DNA from: Zygnema circumcarinatum SAG 698-1b
Taxonomy: Eukaryota > Plantae > Zygnematophyceae
DNA length: 64,000 nt
Reading direction: 5' to 3'
Assembly: GCA_037447605.1 (NCBI GenBank)
Contig: CM074812.1
Location: 1,860,001 to 1,924,000, forward strand
Position 1 is the stretch's first letter; every line of letters starts with the position of its first letter. Below are positions 18,651-39,583 of this stretch, piece by piece. Under the pieces are notes generated by a model that was given only the letters and a program-made list of their open reading frames with translations, had not been told where the DNA came from and ran no database searches. Made by a program: the position numbers and the translations under genes.

Positions 18651-19860
18651 ATGTGAAATTTTGGGTTTCAGAAGAGTCGAGAAAGGCTGCATTGGCGCTA
18701 TCCGAGATTTGGGGTTCAGGCCCGACCAACGCTCGTAACCCTAAGGTCATGCCACGTGGCGCGCATGCAGGAGGCGCCACGTGGCAGGGGCGCACGGCGA
18801 AGGAACACGATTACATGAGTCGCTGTATTTCGCCGCGTGCATGCCTCCTAGGGCGGCAGAGGAGCTGACAGCTGGCGAGTGCTGCTGCTGCACTGCTGCC
18901 CTGCAGGCCCTTGCAAGGGAAGGGGGAGGTCTGCAGAGAGGGTCAGCGAAGCTTTTTATTTCCCCTTTTTTTTTTTTTTGGACTCCTCTAGTTAAAGGAC
19001 TTCATTACAATATTTGGAGGTTTTTATCAAAAAATAGTTTTGATGGCTTAGCCTTCAAAATGCAAAAGGGGCACAGAAAAGTGTCACAACCGTTTGAAGA
19101 CGGCAGCATGAAAAATGATACGCCAGGGCTTCCATACACCATAGCTTGCCACATATGCACAATCATGAGCAAAAGAGAGCATCTTCTGCTAGCACTGAAC
19201 AAGCCATGCTCCCTTTCTTGAAGCTCTTGGCACAGTACATTTGCCGAGCTCATCACTATCATCTACACGCTTCAAGTATACACAGTCACATGGCATGATC
19301 ACAAATGGGTGGCACGTACAATGGCACGAGACATGGTGTGGCATACTTCATTAGCACAAAAAGATTCGATAAAAATAAAGCAGACCCATGAAAACTCTTT
19401 TTTTTTAGAAAAGAAAAAAAAGGAGAGATTCCTCCTATTGCAAGAAGGTCAAAATTGGACGTCTTTGAGCGTCTGTCTTTGTCAAAATACGAAACAGAAA
19501 ATAGAACGGGATGAACTGCATTTCTGTCGAGCCTCTTTAAGCCACACGTGCGTCGGTATCCGTAAACTCTCCTATACACCTCCCTCTCCCGGAATGGCCT
19601 GGCTTACGCTAAACAGAAGAGGAGCCATCGCATAGCCCTTACGGAATTTACACCATATACTGAGGAAGACCTCCAATATCCGCCCAAAAAAAGACCCTGA
19701 ATACCCTGAAGACCCTCATATACGAGTACTACTAGAGGGTACAACTCCAGCTATACTTTACAGTGTTTCGTACAGACTTCCTTGTATGTATGGTAGATCG
19801 TTCATGACATGGGCAGCATCTTCCCCCACCCGCAGAAAATCCACCTTTTCCGTCGTTGCA

Positions 19861-22800
19861 TCATGCAAACATGGACGAAGAGTACTGAGGCCCAAACATG
19901 TCGGTTTTGGGTTGACCAGTTCCTTTGGGTCCTTTCGGTTTCGACAAGGCTTTAAGAAGGTCTTTCTGCCCTTCAGCACTATACAGAAGTGCCCTTGTTT
20001 CCAACCAGCTGCTCCAGGCCTGCATTGCGTTTCCCCCAAAGGTTTAGATAAGAGTGCATTTCTTAGATAGAGTAAGATTAGGGTATTAAGGTTTTACTAC
20101 CACACTGACGATGGAGGTTGTTCCACCATTCAGAGTTCACTATTTTTAGGGAGGTACCTCTCTGTGACGTTCAAGGATAGAGAGCTGCAGACTTGGCGCC
20201 CCTCCCGGAAGGTGCTGTTGAAGGTGGGATGAAAGAACATGAAGGTCCTGCAAGTCTCCGAGTACGCTCTGCAGCTTTCGGACATTAGAAAGAACCCGTT
20301 CAAAGCGCTCATGCCCTCCATAGACAGGCTGGAGGAGCTCCATAGAGTAACGTAATTCTGCACCTCATAACATACAAAGGAGCACTTTAGTAAAGCAGAA
20401 CGAGACTGATCAAGTCCATAACGGTACACGCGTGTTGTGTATGGGTATGAGGAGGGAAAGGGGGATGGAGAGAGAGAGGGGGCCGGGAGAGTTAAACCAC
20501 CCATAACGTATACAACAAGAATCAGAGTAACGCAAACTCCTCCAGAAAACATTGCAAAGAATTTCAGCAATGTCAATGCTTACCACGGAGATTTTTGCGT
20601 AGATCATGCATAGTCGCGCACTGTTTTCCATCCAAAGTTGGCAGGGAGTCTATCGCACTGCTTTTTTTGGATGAAGTTTTCTTCTCCTTTATGCCCAAAG
20701 CACGGACACCCTCTTCCTTACATTCCAAATCTGCTCTCGCCAACCCCCCCACCCAGAATCACACAATGGAATAGGCCAAAAATCTATAAACAAGCACGCC
20801 TGAAGGAAGTCAACACTGCAACTACAGCCGCCTCTGCCTACGAAACTGAAAAAGCTAGTGGATATAAGCAATTGACAGCAATTGACAGCAATTAGCCAAA
20901 CACAGAAAGACTGACGAAACTAACAAAAACAGCTTACAGCTGCAGCTTACGTAGAACACGAATATAATATGAAGCTCTAACTCAACTGAACTGTCTGATG
21001 TAACATGAAAGCAATTTTGAGAAACAATTATAAGATTTCAGGGACCCCTTACCGTCAACATGCCATGCTGGATGCAGCAGCAAGTGGGCGGCCTGCTGTA
21101 CAAGAAGAGCAGGAACCACAAGTCCTGATGAAGAGCTTCCAAGACCCACTAAATTTGTTTTGAAGTGTGGCTTCTTCGCCCACTCCTGCAGAACCCACAA
21201 ATTCACACATCTAATGTTACAATACATCATCATTTGAATCTGCCTAACCCAGGTCCCTACAAGACAGCCATAAAATGAAGTTGAAAAAGCACTAAGAGGG
21301 TAAGCATACTCTAATGCTCACATTGCACCATTTCTTGAACAAAATACATACTCGAATCCGAAAGCCTTACAAGAAGTAACTATAAAAGCAACTCACCAGA
21401 AGTGACTTTTCAAGGCTGACGGCTGATTTGCCTTGCAACACATGAACTGACTTCGAGATTACTTTGGAGCGTTCCGTCTTCAAGCGTTCCTGAAGAGCTG
21501 TGAGAGCCTTCACCTCCTCCTCCTTCACATCCAACGCTGCCTTCCTGACATCGTCCAGTCTTTCCTGCAAACGCCCAAGTTTGGTTGTTGCATTAGCGCA
21601 CTATCACGGACGCAGTCATCATCACAAAAACAATAAAGCATGCAATACAAGCATTAATGCATTAAACATTCTGTGGTTACGTCAGTGTATTAGTCAAACT
21701 GTGTAAGTGTTGCCCATTGTTCTACTTTCACTGACCATTCAAATGCTACAGTACCCCAATGACCAAACTTTTCATCCACGTCCTAACTAACGATAATAAG
21801 ATATGATATTTATCAGCCAACGTTAGTATCTGCAAAACATCTAAGAAAAAATTAAATGGAATACATTTCCAAACGGCGCTTCAGTAAAGGCCAATGATTC
21901 CAAGGCGAGCACAGCAGGACAACCGTGACAAGATCTGAAAATGAATTCAGTGCTAACAAAACTTACTACAACTGTACATGCAGTTACTACATTCAATTGC
22001 CGTGTCATACCTGCATGACATCAGCGTCTCGCAAGGTACCAAGAACGCGAAGAAGTTGCGAAATCTTGTTCGCTTCTAGAACCTTGGGAAGTTCTGCAAA
22101 TACAAGAACATAAAATCCAATTCACTATGCAAATTCCTTCTTTTTCGATTTAGAAGTTCATCACATAAATAAGTGTATCAAGCCGAAACTCAAATGCCGT
22201 GAAAATGTACAGACAAGAGTTTCAATCCGCTCAAAGGATCCTGCAAGATTTCAATCCCTCGCCATTGTACCAAACAGAACGCACACTATCTTTGCTGCCA
22301 ATCTCACTCCCTCTCCCTCTCCTTCTCTTCTTACCAATGAAGGGCCTAAAAGTGTTGACCGCATTTCGTAGCCTGCGCAATACCACTCGGAGGTCGTGAA
22401 TAACCTTTTCTTCCTGCAGAGACAACTTCAAAAACTGCGTCATAGAGTGCCAACAAGTGAATGATAATACTGAAAAACAAAACCAGTTGCTAGAACATGT
22501 GCAAAGGAAGAGAGATCATCACACCAAAGTCACGAGGTACAAACCAACAAACAGTTTCATTCAGCTACTCCAAACAGCGATCTCATGCTTCATATTGCCA
22601 AAGCCACGAATGTCAAAAAAATCCAGAGCAAATTTCTTGTCGTTTAGTCCCCCGCATTTCTCGCTTTCGTGTAGTTTGCATCCACTCACAAGTGACTCCG
22701 ATAGGCGATTGAACTTCTGTGAACAATCATCTTGCAGCTTCAGCATGCCCTTTGAAAGCACACCTTCCAAAGCCTCTTTGTATGCTGGGACAGAGTCCAC

Positions 22801-23832
22801 CTGCACAGGATGGTACAGACAAGGCACGAGTTTATGATGAGAAAAAAGCCATCAATTACATCCATCATACATTTCGATTAGTACATCATTCATTCCATTG
22901 AAAACAGCACCTTCAAGAACTACAACATTTATCAAACCCAGGTAATAGGTCAGGCGTATTGGGAATTGCAATCTTGGCATTCAAAGATCTGCACTTGCAC
23001 GAACCTCTTCGTCAGAAACAGATGGCAAGGGAATTTCTTCGTCTGCTTTGCTGACAAGAGGCCCGTTGACTCCCCTCACATCATCATCGTTGGCATTTTC
23101 AACTTTTTCTAGCTCATTCTTCTTCCCTTTTTTTCCTTTTCCCTTCTTTTTCTCCTTCTTCGCATGGACCTCGTTTTCTTGAACGGTGATGATGCCAGTT
23201 GGAGCAGGCAAGGCGGGAAGCCGCTCCTCGTTAACTTCTTCATCTTCTTCAGAAACAGTTGGCGAAAAGTTTTTTTCCTCTGCCTTTCTTACATGAGAGT
23301 CATTGACTGGGGTTACATCATCATCGTCATCATCATCATCATCAGCACCTTCACCCTTCTCCCGCTCATTATACTTCCCTTTTCTTCCTTTCCCCTTCTT
23401 CCTCTCATCTTTGAAAAAACCAGTAGATTCATTCCAAGATACATTGTCCACAGCAGAGTCTCTCCCCTTTTCTCCCTTCAAACCTCCGCTTCCAATCTTT
23501 TTGCCATTTACTTTGGTCCCATTCACTCGCTGCTCCTCATCCGCCTTCAACACAGCGCCGCCTTTGCTCGCCTTGCAGACGCCGTAGCTCCTCCTTCCAC
23601 AGCACGTCCAAAACCCTAACCTCGTGCTGCTTCCAAAACCCTCCTGCAGGCCCTGTCCCTGCTTCAAGCTCCTGCCAACGAGCCAACGGTTGGCAGAAAC
23701 TCCTGCGGCTGCAGAAGCTCCCAATTCGAATTCAAACCCACATTTGGCGGAGTTCTGGGTCCCAACGGCGAGGGGCGGGCGGGCGGTGCAGGCGGGGGCG
23801 AGGGGGAGGCGGAGGAGGGAATATGCCGCCAT
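19861..23832 (-). CDS. CHAD-domain (polyphosphate-binding) protein with transit-peptide-like N-terminus and Lys/Asp/Glu-rich linker, 9 exons
   Basis: Exons 23832-23005, 22800-22690, 22413-22335 (VIHDLRVVLRRLRNAV), 22093-22011 (LLRVLGTLRDADVMQ), 21564-21397, 21185-21053 (HLLLHPAW), 20730-20584 (MHDLRKNLR), 20357-20158 (ELRYSMELL...VLGDLQDLHVL) and 20019-19861. All phases are consistent, and both HxxRxxxRxxR / LGxxxDxxV CHAD half-repeats are present. Confidence 0.92.
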
Positions 23833-24926
23833 GGCCGGAAGATGCTCTCGCAGCCAATACTGGCCGGGAAAAGGGCATTTTCCAATTTTTTGACGGCCGG
23901 ATGCCGGCCAGCCGAAAAAGTTGACGATGACGGCCGGCGGGGCGGTCTTCTGGAGATTTCCGAATCGGGACATGGCACGACGAATGGTAGCGGGCAAGAA
24001 AGTGTTCGTTTTTGATTTCGGGTACCGATTCTGCGTTATCGAGAAAATACGGCCGGCGGAAAATTTGTGGGAGGGAAACCTCGAGAAGGAGGCGGTTACT
24101 CGCCGACCAATGAACAGCCTGGATGGGTCTCAACCATTTAAAATCCGTACTTTGTGGAAGGGTTTTCTCACTACAGTACTTTACTGTATTGAGGAAGCCT
24201 TCGAGTACGGCTTCTTTGTTGGATGGTCCTGTCAAACCAGACATGTAGACGTACGGACGATTTACAATTTGAGTTTCATGTAGAAAGGAACCGCACAAGT
24301 AATTTAACTGCATCAGGACATGGAATCCAGTTAAGCGTTGAACGCATTTCAAAAAATACTCACAGTGATGTACCACCTTTGACTTTGACTTCTGGTCGTC
24401 GCGTGCTTTTGAACAGGAAGGAACGCGTCCCTGCGATGCTCGTACAACTTCCAACCGTCGTATGTGCGACTTTGTGCGACCATTTCAGCGAATCCATGTA
24501 ATCGCATGCCCTGCGACATTCCCTGTGACTAATGAGAGACCCATGCGACAGGTACTGCGACTTCCGTGCGACGCGTGCGACATCACCTGCGACGCAATTT
24601 CGGCCGATTTTCTTTCCTGGGCCTTTGACTCCCTCCTTTTTTTCTCAACTCCATCGCGAACCAAAAAAAAACAAATATCGGACCACTCAATTTCTACCAC
24701 GTGGACAACCTTGGACACGTGGCGCGTTGCCAATGGAAGTCGGTCTCCATGGGAAGGTGGCACCTTGTCCATGTCGCTTTCATGTGGGCATCCATTTTAG
24801 CCACCAATCTCCCTCTTCCACTCTTTCTCTCTCTGTCTCTCTCTCTCCCTCTCTCTCCCTCTCTCTCTCTCTCTCTCGTCCTTCAGTCTCCCTCTGGCAA
24901 CCCGCAGCAGCAGCCGACTCGCGGAC

Positions 24927-36761: not shown

Positions 36762-39583
36762 ATGGAAAGGCTTTCTTCGGCGAACCTTGTGCTGCTCAAT
36801 TTTCTGGTCGCCGTGGCACTAAGTTTTCCCGGTTTGGCTGCTGCCCAGGTGAGGATAAAGGAAAGAAAGATATTTGCTGCACAAAAGCTGCTTGCTGCTT
36901 GTTGCTTGCATTATGGTTTTTACGAAAAAGTTCATGGATAAATTGTGAATACAAAGTACGTTAACACGGGACTGGTTACGGAAACGTTAGGGTTGAAAAT
37001 TAGGGATTTAAATTTCACCTCTTCTGCATTGTGCCCGTCTTGCGGACTCCTGTTAACTAAACGTTCAACCTTCTCCCTCTCCCTCTCCCTCTCCCTCTCC
37101 CTCTCCCTCCCTCTCCCTCTCTCCCTCCCTCTCCCTCTCCCTCTCCCTCTCCCTCTCCCTCTCCCTCTCCCTCTCCCTCTCCCTCTCCCTCTCCCTCTCC
37201 CTCTCCCTCTCCTTCTCCCTCTCCCTCTCCCTCTCCCTCTCCCTCTCCTCTCCCTCTCCTCTCCCTCTCCCTCTCCCTCTCCCTCTCCCTCTCCTCTCCC
37301 TCTCCCTCTCCCTTCCTCCCTTCCTCCCTCCCTTCCTCCCTCCCTTCCTCCCTCCTTTCAAACTAGTGTTTCAAATCTTCCCTATACTGACCCTCCCATC
37401 GTATTCCCCCCTCCTCCCAGACCCCTGCTCCGGTGTACAACAAAGACACCGACGGCAAAGCTTTGCTTTTCCTCAAGAACAATGTTGTGGACAGCAAGGG
37501 GGCCACTCTCAATTGGACGAATACGGACCTTGTGTGCGAATGGAGCGGAGTTGAATGTGTGGGAGATCGAGTAGCGAGCATAGTATTGGAAGATGCAGGC
37601 TTAGTGGGGACTTTTCCGAACAACTTTGTTCCCTTAACCAACTTACAGAGGTTCGTTGTGACCGGAAATAACTTGACCGGAGCGATCCCAGCAACTCTCA
37701 CATCATGCATTTCTCTCGCAATTTTGGACCTTTCGGATAATTTGTTGACCGGGGAGATTCCTAGCAGTCTCGGAAGTCTGAAGGGGCTCACTTACCTCTC
37801 TCTGAAAGGGAATCAGTTGACGGGAGAAGTTCCCACTCTCACTTTCAACTTCTTAACTCATTTCGACATTTCGGAAAATACTCTTGTCGGAAATCTTCCC
37901 TCAACTTTATCTCAAAGTCCGCTCACAGACTTGTACGTGAACAACAATGAGTTTTCGGGATTCCTCCCCTCTGACCTAATTTTGGGTCTCTCACAAACCG
38001 TAATTTCTCTCGACTTTTCGAACAACAGATTTTCAGGAATCGTTCCGGCAGCTTTCGGAAACTGCACCAATTTAACTTCTCTTTATTTGAGCAATAACTT
38101 GTTAGAGGGAGCCCTTCCTTCTAGACTCCCTTCCTCCTTGACAACTCTTCACCTTTCAGGAAACCGACTGAGTGGGAGTCTCCCTCTCTCCCTCACCAAC
38201 AGCTCCACTCTCACTGAAATCGATGTATCCCAAAATTCCTTCTCTGGAAGCTTCCCAAGATTCTGTGGCGGAGATTATTCTCCCCTTGAAAAATTTTACG
38301 CATCATTTAACAACATGTCAGGAACGATTCCCACAAGTCTTTCAAACTGCCAATCTCTTCAAGAACTCGATTTAAGTCACAATTTTTTATATGGGGTTCT
38401 CCCAACCCTCTGTCAGCCGAGCTTACTTATTTTTAACGCAAGTGACAATTTTTTGACCGGAGGGTTTCCTTCAGATTTGAGCAAATGTTCGAGTATTTCT
38501 GAAATTATTTTGAGCCGAAATAATTTGACAGGTCCCCTTTCCTCTGCCCTCAGCTCCCTCCCTTTCCTCTCAGTTCTGGATTTGAGCAATAATCAAATTG
38601 CGGGTGGAATTCCGGCCAAATTCTCCAATTTTCCGAGCCTCTCATTTATCGATTTATCGGCCAATAATTTGGACGGAATCATTCCAAAATTGACTTTTAA
38701 TTCAAGTAGTGAAACTCTTGAGCAGATCAACCTGTCACACAATCGATTTTCAGGCGCAATTCCTTCAGTTTTTCCCACACTTCTTGAATATGCTCTTTCA
38801 ATTTTGGACCTCGGATACAATGAGCTCTCGGGAGGATTATCCGACGCATTCAATGCCAATGTTTCTGTCGCATATTTGGGATTAAACAACAACAAATTAT
38901 CCGGAAATTTAGTTCCCCTCGACATTGTGGATATTACTCTGCTCGATCTCTCATCAAATTTCTTTTATGGACCTCTCCCTGATATGCCTTTAAGACTGGA
39001 GGACCTCAGAATCAACAATAACAGCTTTTCTGGTGAACTTCCGATTCAGATTACGAATCTGACCCTCTTAAAATCGATCGATTTATCGGAAAACAAGTTC
39101 ACTGGAGCCATTCCTCCGGAAATCCGGCATTTGGATCAACTCGTTTACCTTAATTTTTCTTCTAATCTCCTTTCCGGGGAGATTCCCACTGAGCTCGGAA
39201 CTCTGGTTGATCTTCAACTTCTTGATCTCTCCAAAAATAGCCTCTCGGGAGCCCTCCCTCCCTCTCTCTCGGATCTCGCCCTACTAAAAAATTTCAGCGT
39301 CGCTGAAAATCAATTAACTGGGGCAATTCCTGGGGGTGCCCTTCAATTTTTTCCGACCGAAAGTTTTATTAACAATACTGGCCTTTGTGGGTCTCCCCTC
39401 CCTGACTGTTCTGGAGGAATTGGGGGGCCCATAATTGGAGGAATTGGAAGTCCCCCTCCCCCAGGAGCAGCTCCCTCTCCCTCAGGGACGGAACGGCGGT
39501 GTTCAGTGATGCAGTTTCAGTTTCTGTTACAGGTCACGGTAGCGGCCGCATCTGTGTTACTTTTGGGGGTCCTCTTTGGGTGA
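36762..39583 (+). CDS. Extracellular leucine-rich-repeat protein (receptor-like, no kinase), probable GPI anchor, 2 exons
   Basis: Signal-peptide exon 36762-36848 (MERLSSANLVLLNFLVAVALSFPGLAAAQ) splices to 37421-39583. It encodes an N-cap (ALLFLK..W..CEWSGVEC), about 25 plant-type LxxLxLxxNxLxGxIP repeats, a C-cap (FINNTGLCGSPLPDC), a Pro/Gly spacer and a terminal hydrophobic stretch with no cytosolic tail. Confidence 0.93.
37072..37350 (+). repeat. (CTCTCC)n-dominated pyrimidine microsatellite in intron 1 of the LRR gene
   Basis: A long near-perfect hexamer array followed by three CTCCCTTC-type units. Confidence 0.9.

Follow-up and report, generated by a model that had tools for sequence, protein, structure and literature searches.

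Whether the nuclear genome of a streptophyte alga harbours a genuine CHAD gene, from where such a gene would have been acquired and what its product might do are questions raised by a locus of Zygnema circumcarinatum SAG 698-1b which lies within a 64-kb stretch of contig CM074812.1; this stretch, analysed over its full length of 64,000 nucleotides (nt), is referred to as the window. CHADs are modules which bind inorganic polyphosphate (polyP) without possessing enzymatic activity and which, in bacteria, reside on polyP granules, where they have been named phosins (PMC6537752; Tumlirsch and Jendrossek 2017 as a secondary citation). Papers of 2019 call the CHAD of Ricinus communis (RcCHAD) the only plant CHAD known (PMC6537752), and according to reviews neither a bona fide PPK nor a bona fide Vtc4 is known from plants, and just a single CHAD, whose origin is doubtful (PMC6537752 for the CHAD). 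With a probability of roughly 0.6 for the reading as a whole, we consider the window gene to be an old, expressed nuclear gene of streptophytes which encodes a plastid phosin of cyanobacterial descent.

The gene is situated on the minus strand and extends from an ATG at 23832 to a stop codon at 19861-19863 (coordinates refer to the window; features are compiled in Table 1). Its nine exons, once joined, form a single open frame with a coding sequence of 1908 nt specifying 635 amino acids (aa). RNA evidence comes from four public runs of this organism, whose contigs were placed on positions 19400-24300 of the window, and spliced contigs were present in three runs from two studies (run X1 of study P1, runs X2 and X3 of study P2). 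They confirm eight of eight introns, all GT-AG on the gene strand (CT..AC on the plus strand), with exon end phases of 0,0,1,0,0,1,1,0 at introns 1 to 8; the joint 20730/21053 is present in X1, X2 and X3, the joint 20357/20584 in X1 and X2. The word depth of the contigs amounts to about 1000-2600 on exons versus 16-30 in introns. Since eight GT-AG joints are found and exon depth far exceeds intron depth, the gene is transcribed and spliced and constitutes a real, expressed CHAD gene. An earlier interpretation of the locus from its letters (henceforth the sequence-only reading) had assigned nine phase-consistent exons to a genuine nuclear gene, which is borne out by the RNA-confirmed introns and by limits which match the ATG and the stop codon exactly. 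An ab initio model built from stop-to-stop frames and GT/AG sites likewise contains nine exons, six junction pairs of which are upheld by RNA; its acceptors at 22434 (exon 3) and 20649 (exon 7) were discarded, as the RNA joints put them at 22413 and 20730. At the 5' end, an X3 contig is collinear with the genome as far as 23823, and the depth upstream of 23828 drops to 65 in X3 and to 0 in the other two runs, compared to 1083 immediately downstream. Most transcripts therefore exclude an in-frame upstream ATG near 23973. Run X6, which stems from a third study under the same species label, provides no real coverage of the gene but just low-complexity pieces of 20 nt; this may reflect a dependence of expression on condition or strain, or else a different kind of library.

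To what extent the product is a CHAD protein was assessed by Pfam and NCBIfam scans run exon by exon, and, for the profile, tree and intron comparisons, by local comparison of the joined 635-aa protein with fetched sequences. Matches to the Pfam CHAD family (PF05235) are found in exon 3 (profile 22-46, 22.7 bits, E 1e-4), exon 4 (profile 57-75, 13.3 bits, E 0.08) and exon 8 (profile 185-228, 40.9 bits against a curated cut-off of 25.6, E 3e-10). They follow the order of the profile, exon 8 alone exceeding the curated cut-off; exon 1 matches no Pfam family, and the NCBIfam scan of the exons returned nothing meaningful. A profile derived from an alignment of cyanobacterial stand-alone CHADs (A1) recognises a single domain in the 635-aa protein, which comprises aa 292-616 and scores 211 bits (E 1.5e-64). 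In contrast, non-cyanobacterial CHADs reach 137 bits at most with the same profile and are mostly split in two. Each half of the CHAD contains one HxxRxxxR motif (aa 319 and 509) and one LGxLxDxxV motif (aa 357 and 549), so that the two-repeat CHAD is complete, in agreement with what had been deduced before, as are the ordered Pfam matches and the undivided profile match. The LRY motif corresponds to aa 518-520. The sequence LLLHPAW is present at aa 458-464, with HPAW at aa 461-464, and since H212, P213 and W215 of the LHPxW motif are invariant in A1, the sequence-only reading had rightly named LLLHPxW as a motif of cyanobacterial CHADs.

An exhaustive HMMER search with exon 8 retrieved only 14 proteins at E <= 1e-3. 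The best of them, P0001, is a 665-aa transcriptome protein which, like the window protein, consists of a leader, Lys-rich/acidic repeats and a C-terminal CHAD; a repeat protein of 794 aa (P0003) and P0004 lack any match to the CHAD profile and were rejected as spurious exon 8 matches. Word searches starting from P0001 and P0002 yielded as eukaryotic kin Klebsormidium nitens KFL_010270010 (GAQ92488.1), three Closterium species and Netrium digitus, and, in addition, a protein of 496-550 aa encoded on TARA Oceans scaffolds. One TARA scaffold is most likely prasinodermophyte, since it carries eukaryote-type genes (SUEL lectin, RCC1) and since the product of a neighbouring gene falls into a cluster, at >=90% identity, with a protein of Prasinoderma singulare. 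On scaffold L081 (10001-14123) the intron-less CHAD homologue is located about 1.4 kb from an LpxB gene called in two pieces, a proximity which may be due to chance. Among bacteria the nearest sequences, one of which carries the name Limnothrix, belong to stand-alone CHADs about 350 aa in length, with E values from 1e-23 to 1e-30. A gap then separates them from CYTH-CHAD proteins, which appear at E > 1e-11, and identity to a bacterial protein reaches no more than about 30%. Scanning the GTDB species genomes with stand-alone CHADs produced 80 loci, 77 of them from named cyanobacteria and three from unnamed metagenome-assembled genomes, and an Atlas feature search returned generic bacterial CHAD clusters only. 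No homologue from an embryophyte, a red alga or a glaucophyte was seen in word searches, which are patchy, or in the exhaustive search, which used exon 8 only; as the Klebsormidium word search missed even known kin, absence from land plants cannot be claimed.

The phylogeny was computed by maximum likelihood (LG+C20+F+G4) from 94 CHAD domains and 337 columns. Its rows comprise eight streptophyte and two TARA sequences, 31 named cyanobacteria, nine close metagenomic kin of the cyanobacterial proteins and the 44 nearest other bacterial CHADs from the searches; RcCHAD is outside this set. Cyanobacteria and eukaryotes together are separated from the other bacterial CHADs with a support of 100/100, and a quick tree agrees with this result. 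The eukaryotes, i.e. the window protein, Klebsormidium, Closterium, Netrium and the Prasinoderma-like alga, form a clade supported by 100/100, whose branch is long (about 1.1 substitutions per site). Within it the window protein belongs to a clade (99/94) with P0001, P0002/P0101 and Zygnematophyceae. The phylogenetic check proposed earlier thus assigns the protein to the cyanobacterial type which the sequence-only reading had claimed.

Exon-intron structure bears on the age of the gene. Annotated proteins were mapped exactly onto the DNA of the Klebsormidium and Closterium loci with GT/GC-AG introns, and six introns turned out to occupy the same alignment column with the same phase (0,1,0,0,1,1) in the window gene, Klebsormidium and Closterium. 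Intron 1 of the window gene is common to Klebsormidium and intron 8 to Closterium, so that eight of eight introns are shared with one or both; the Prasinoderma-like homologue has no intron. These correspondences, read from sequence, indicate that the gene was nuclear and already contained most of its present introns before the split of Klebsormidiophyceae and Zygnematophyceae, and it was probably present in early Viridiplantae. Taken together, cyanobacterial descent combined with ancient nuclear residence is very probable in view of the tree and the intron positions. As to differences among the loci, the Klebsormidium gene contains one private intron (phase 0) and a phase-2 intron near the 3' end, and the Closterium gene a phase-1 intron in the leader and one GC-AG intron; gain or loss of introns therefore continued at the gene ends only.

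The first 95 residues of the window protein start with MAA, are rich in Ala and contain 11 K/R versus 3 D/E (isoelectric point (pI) about 9.8), with four Pro among the first 20 positions; the Ala/Ser/Arg-rich N-terminus noted before is thereby recognisable as Ala-rich and basic. The first acidic residue occurs at position 34, compared to positions 20 in Netrium, 49 in P0001, 77 in Klebsormidium and 88 in Closterium. All five full-length orthologues begin with MA.. and an acid-poor stretch rich in Ser, Thr, Ala, Pro and Arg, and their extensions ahead of the CHAD span 63-290 aa, whereas cyanobacterial homologues lack an extension. In Klebsormidium the leader runs directly into the CHAD. Conserved in kind and not in sequence, the leader is likely transit-peptide-like and would mediate import, and its composition makes the plastid a plausible and slightly favoured location of the window protein. 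Between leader and CHAD lies a polyampholyte region with two copies of a module of about 60 aa (aa 140-206 and 224-282), in each of which an acidic block comes after a Lys/Gly-rich one; self-alignment gives a score of 128 versus 38.6 +/- 6.7 for shuffles. Among the orthologues a similar repeat region is present in P0001 only. A run of nine Asp residues in exon 1, which falls within one of the two copies, is encoded by a tract which the tandem repeat finder describes as (CAT)9.7 on the plus strand at 23316-23344. Because the RNA contigs break over this tract, at 23312-23358, it may vary in length or have been mis-assembled.

Several points weigh against the favoured reading. Cyanobacterial descent does not prove plastid residence, the leader is judged from its composition, and the Lys-rich blocks resemble nuclear localisation signals. 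The placement of the eukaryote clade among the cyanobacteria is poorly supported, and early horizontal and endosymbiotic transfer are therefore inseparable. Of the proposal that the gene derives from the endosymbiont, its age and cyanobacterial source stand, as tree, shared introns and the Prasinoderma-like homologue attest; they fit an endosymbiotic as well as a very early transfer, between which they do not distinguish. Moreover, no ppk, ppx or CYTH genes are located beside the CHAD gene at two loci, in Crocosphaera and Anabaena. In addition, the only plant-derived CHAD tested, RcCHAD, is nuclear and nucleolar in Arabidopsis and tobacco (PMC6537752), and residues 1-60 may not be the sole N-terminus of the window protein, as contigs of X1 and X2 diverge upstream of 23652.

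Both latter observations speak for the alternative which survives best, namely that the protein resides in the nucleus and nucleolus or in the cytosol, where it would bind a nuclear polyP pool or other polyanions, its Lys-rich blocks acting as nuclear localisation signals. Such Lys/Gly-rich blocks (aa 144-152 and 224-237) are contained in the duplicated modules, and the interaction of lysine-rich and PASK regions with polyP concerns chiefly nuclear proteins (PMC13511156). Yet the orthologues of Klebsormidium, Netrium and Closterium, which are devoid of a Lys-rich region, retain an acid-poor leader of 60-140 aa ahead of the CHAD, and RcCHAD is of betaproteobacterial type, leaderless and was expressed heterologously (PMC6537752). 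We regard a nuclear or cytosolic location as unlikely, though the Lys-rich/acidic repeat makes a nuclear one a serious competitor. As to the break within exon 1, part of the X1 and X2 contigs follow the gene as far as 23653 and continue with 255 nt found nowhere in the window. Read on the gene strand, these 255 nt are in frame with codon 61. The depth upstream of the break is about halved in X1 and X2 and not in X3. The additional letters may represent an alternative first exon, at a distance of over 40 kb or located on a separate piece, which would replace aa 1-60; they may equally stem from a paralogue or allele, or from an assembly chimera. If real, an alternative first exon would swap the first 60 residues and thereby bear on targeting, and the removal of aa 1-60 would favour the nuclear or cytosolic alternative.

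A mitochondrial address, exclusive or shared with the plastid, where the protein would bind mitochondrial polyP, appears improbable. A basic, acid-poor N-terminus fits mitochondrial presequences as well, but Pro, Ser, Thr and Ala abound in the leaders (four Pro occur among residues 1-20 of the window protein, and the leader of Klebsormidium contains eight), which would argue against an amphipathic helix. Besides, cyanobacterial ancestry suits the plastid better.

Regarding the ligand, exchange of H253, R256, R260, R296, R418 and Y419 in the CHAD of Chlorobium tepidum (CtCHAD) reduces polyP binding up to 150-fold (Lorenzo-Orts et al., PMC6537752). These contact residues were placed via an alignment of P0002 with CtCHAD and then transferred onto the window protein, where H253/R256/R260 correspond to H319/R322/R326, R296 to R361 and R418/Y419 to R519/Y520; by this transfer, six of six are conserved. 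For the orthologue P0001, which is 43% identical to the window protein, the CHAD part was modelled with AlphaFold; the model is all-helical, with a predicted local distance difference test (pLDDT) score of 86 and a predicted template modelling score (pTM) of 0.83. It matches, in this order, the CtCHAD-polyP complex (6qva), 6qv7, Streptomyces PptA (6rn5), 3e0s and RcCHAD (6qv5), after which the scores drop sharply. Both bundles of the CHAD crystal structures are covered (330-346 columns), and the comparison with 6qva gives a template modelling (TM) score of 0.61-0.71 at 18% identity. The conserved contact residues and the modelled fold of the orthologue make it probable that the window protein binds polyP, and as the His/Arg/Tyr residues of the pore are kept, polyP binding or granule coating is predicted. 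Preservation of the fold with a changed ligand, be it nucleic acid, a sulfated or acidic polysaccharide or a metal, is even less credible than a mitochondrial address. CtCHAD binds heparin too (PMC6537752) and the branch of the eukaryote clade is long, but all six tested contact residues are conserved, and those CHADs that have been tested, drawn from three domains of life, bind polyP but neither DNA nor RNA (PMC6537752).

A bacterial contaminant, or a recent horizontal transfer of the kind suspected for RcCHAD, would be suggested by the fact that CHADs are about 99% bacterial, which agrees with their description as mainly prokaryotic in the sequence-only reading, and by the identity of about 80% between RcCHAD and a protein of Duganella (PMC6537752). 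Either is ruled out for practical purposes by the eight RNA-confirmed spliceosomal introns and their sharing with streptophyte algae, the Prasinoderma-like homologue, the low best bacterial identity and the plant-type neighbourhood.

According to the favoured reading, the window gene would encode a phosin, i.e. a non-enzymatic polyP-binding protein, whose CHAD would be derived from cyanobacterial stand-alone CHAD proteins and would most likely bind polyP chains or coat polyP granules. A first eukaryotic gain would be the acid-poor leader rich in Ala, Ser, Pro and Arg, most likely a transit peptide directing the protein into the plastid. The second, confined to this alga and its closest relative, would be the duplicated Lys-rich/acidic (PASK-like) module, which could add multivalent contacts with polyP or other polyanions. 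The protein might act jointly with a cyanobacterial-type PPK1; a PPK1 of cyanobacterial affinity exists in Ostreococcus, Physcomitrella and red algae (PMC3680246). In cyanobacteria, polyP organises the nucleoid and carboxysomes (PMC13081873). By analogy, and as a speculation to which we attach little probability, the protein might do in the plastid what a granule organiser does in bacteria, its CHAD holding plastid polyP made by PPK1 and its modules tethering or condensing polyP at the plastid nucleoid or the carbon-fixing machinery, while alternative first exons might send one isoform elsewhere. If this were true, the cyanobacterial polyP system would have survived in the chloroplasts of streptophyte algae and been lost toward seed plants.

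Comparison with known systems sets the protein in context. Cyanobacterial stand-alone CHADs of about 320-390 aa (Limnothrix, Microcoleus, Microcystis, Crocosphaera, Anabaena) consist of the same domain over their whole length; their own function is still to be tested (PMC13081873). They have in common with the window protein the motifs HDLRK...LRY and LHP(G/A)W and the lack of a CYTH, PPX or HD partner domain, at about 30% identity and with a sister or nested position in the tree. In contrast to them, the window protein is encoded in the nucleus by a gene with eight introns and features the 95-aa leader, a charged repeat region of 180 aa and a longer Lys/Ser-rich linker between the bundles. 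CtCHAD (6qv7, 6qva, 3e0s), Ralstonia PptA-type proteins and Streptomyces PptA (6rn5) show two four-helix bundles, as does the P0001 model; CtCHAD and the other phosins, however, are bacterial cytoplasmic granule proteins, none of which has an import leader, CtCHAD having an N-terminal region of its own. RcCHAD resembles the window protein in being an expressed CHAD from a plant genome, and it binds polyP in vitro (PMC6537752). Yet it is thought to result from a recent transfer, and it lacks a leader (PMC6537752). Kinship of the algal family with RcCHAD was considered and discarded, since P0002 matches 6qv5 with only 30 bits (E 2e-6) and the structural match is weaker than that of CtCHAD. The orthologues of Klebsormidium, Closterium and Netrium have the same layout of leader and CHAD, and six to seven introns are shared in the case of Klebsormidium and Closterium; they lack the Lys-rich/acidic repeat modules of the window protein. 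Lys-rich low-complexity repeats linked to polyP granules or to polyP interaction are known from Pseudomonas AlgP and from PASK/lysine-rich proteins (PMC13511156 for the latter). Unlike these, the repeats of the window protein are fused to a CHAD and alternate with acidic blocks, and the likeness is an analogy only.

In the literature we found no paper which links CHAD or phosins to streptophyte or other green algae, and the orthologues bear automatic database names only. The window gene shows that green algae possess a true eukaryotic CHAD family which is ancient, spliced, expressed, of cyanobacterial descent and equipped with an import-type leader. This touches on the open question of where, or whether, the plant lineage keeps polyP outside vacuoles. 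Judged from its sequence, the gene points to a possible undescribed polyP store, probably in the chloroplast, and offers a handle for testing whether the algae related to land plants keep polyP in their plastids, be it as a native polyP probe, as a knockout target or as a partner of PPK1. It may also help to date the loss of the cyanobacterial-type polyP system. For specialists in polyP and plastid evolution its interest consists in the fact that the presence of polyP in the plastids of these algae becomes directly testable.

Table 1. Features of the CHAD gene and its product in the window (positions in the window; residues of the 635-aa protein).
Feature	Position	Strand	Remarks
Putative transit peptide (leader-like segment)	23548..23832	-	aa 1-95; by composition
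AG acceptor within exon 1	23652..23654	-	contig break lies at AG 23654-23653
Polyampholyte region	23005..23547	-	aa 96-276; 35 K/R, 46 D/E, pI 4.9
CHAD domain	19921..22755	-	aa 292-616, exons 2-9
Exon 1	23005..23832	-	aa 1-276; joint 22800/23005 in X1, X2 and X3
Exon 2	22690..22800	-	aa 277-313; first CHAD helix; joints 22800/23005 and 22413/22690
Exon 3	22335..22413	-	aa 314-340, phase 1 end; H319, R322, R326 (22398-22375)
Exon 4	22011..22093	-	aa 340-367; LGTLRDADV with R361
Exon 5	21397..21564	-	aa 368-423; long helices of first bundle; joints 21564/22011 and 21185/21397
Exon 6	21053..21185	-	aa 424-468, phase 1 end; LLLHPAW at 21083-21063
Exon 7	20584..20730	-	aa 468-517, phase 1 end; variable Lys/Ser-rich linker, then MHDLRKNLR (H509, R512, R516)
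Exon 8	20158..20357	-	aa 517-583; LRY (R519, Y520) and LGDLQDLHV
Exon 9	19861..20019	-	aa 584-635 and stop codon 19861-19863; joint 20019/20158
3' untranslated region	19400..19860	-	at least 460 nt; X1 contig unbroken from 19400 into exon 9

A few minor observations concern the locus and its surroundings. A low-depth joint 21528/22307 with AT..CA borders (depth 32-48) was judged an artefact. In X2 and X3 a loose contig end is present at 21507, which continues with 255 nt without match in the window. The joint and the loose end probably reflect errors of assembly or infrequent mis-splicing. The neighbourhood of the gene is of plant type: an open reading frame of 716 aa on the plus strand (37433-39583) encodes an LRRNT_2 cap and many leucine-rich repeats, which gives it the look of a receptor-like protein and marks the window as streptophyte DNA. 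Intron 6 of the CHAD gene, finally, holds a perfect tandem repeat of a 10-nt unit, AGCAATTGAC, in 2.7 copies at 20867-20893.

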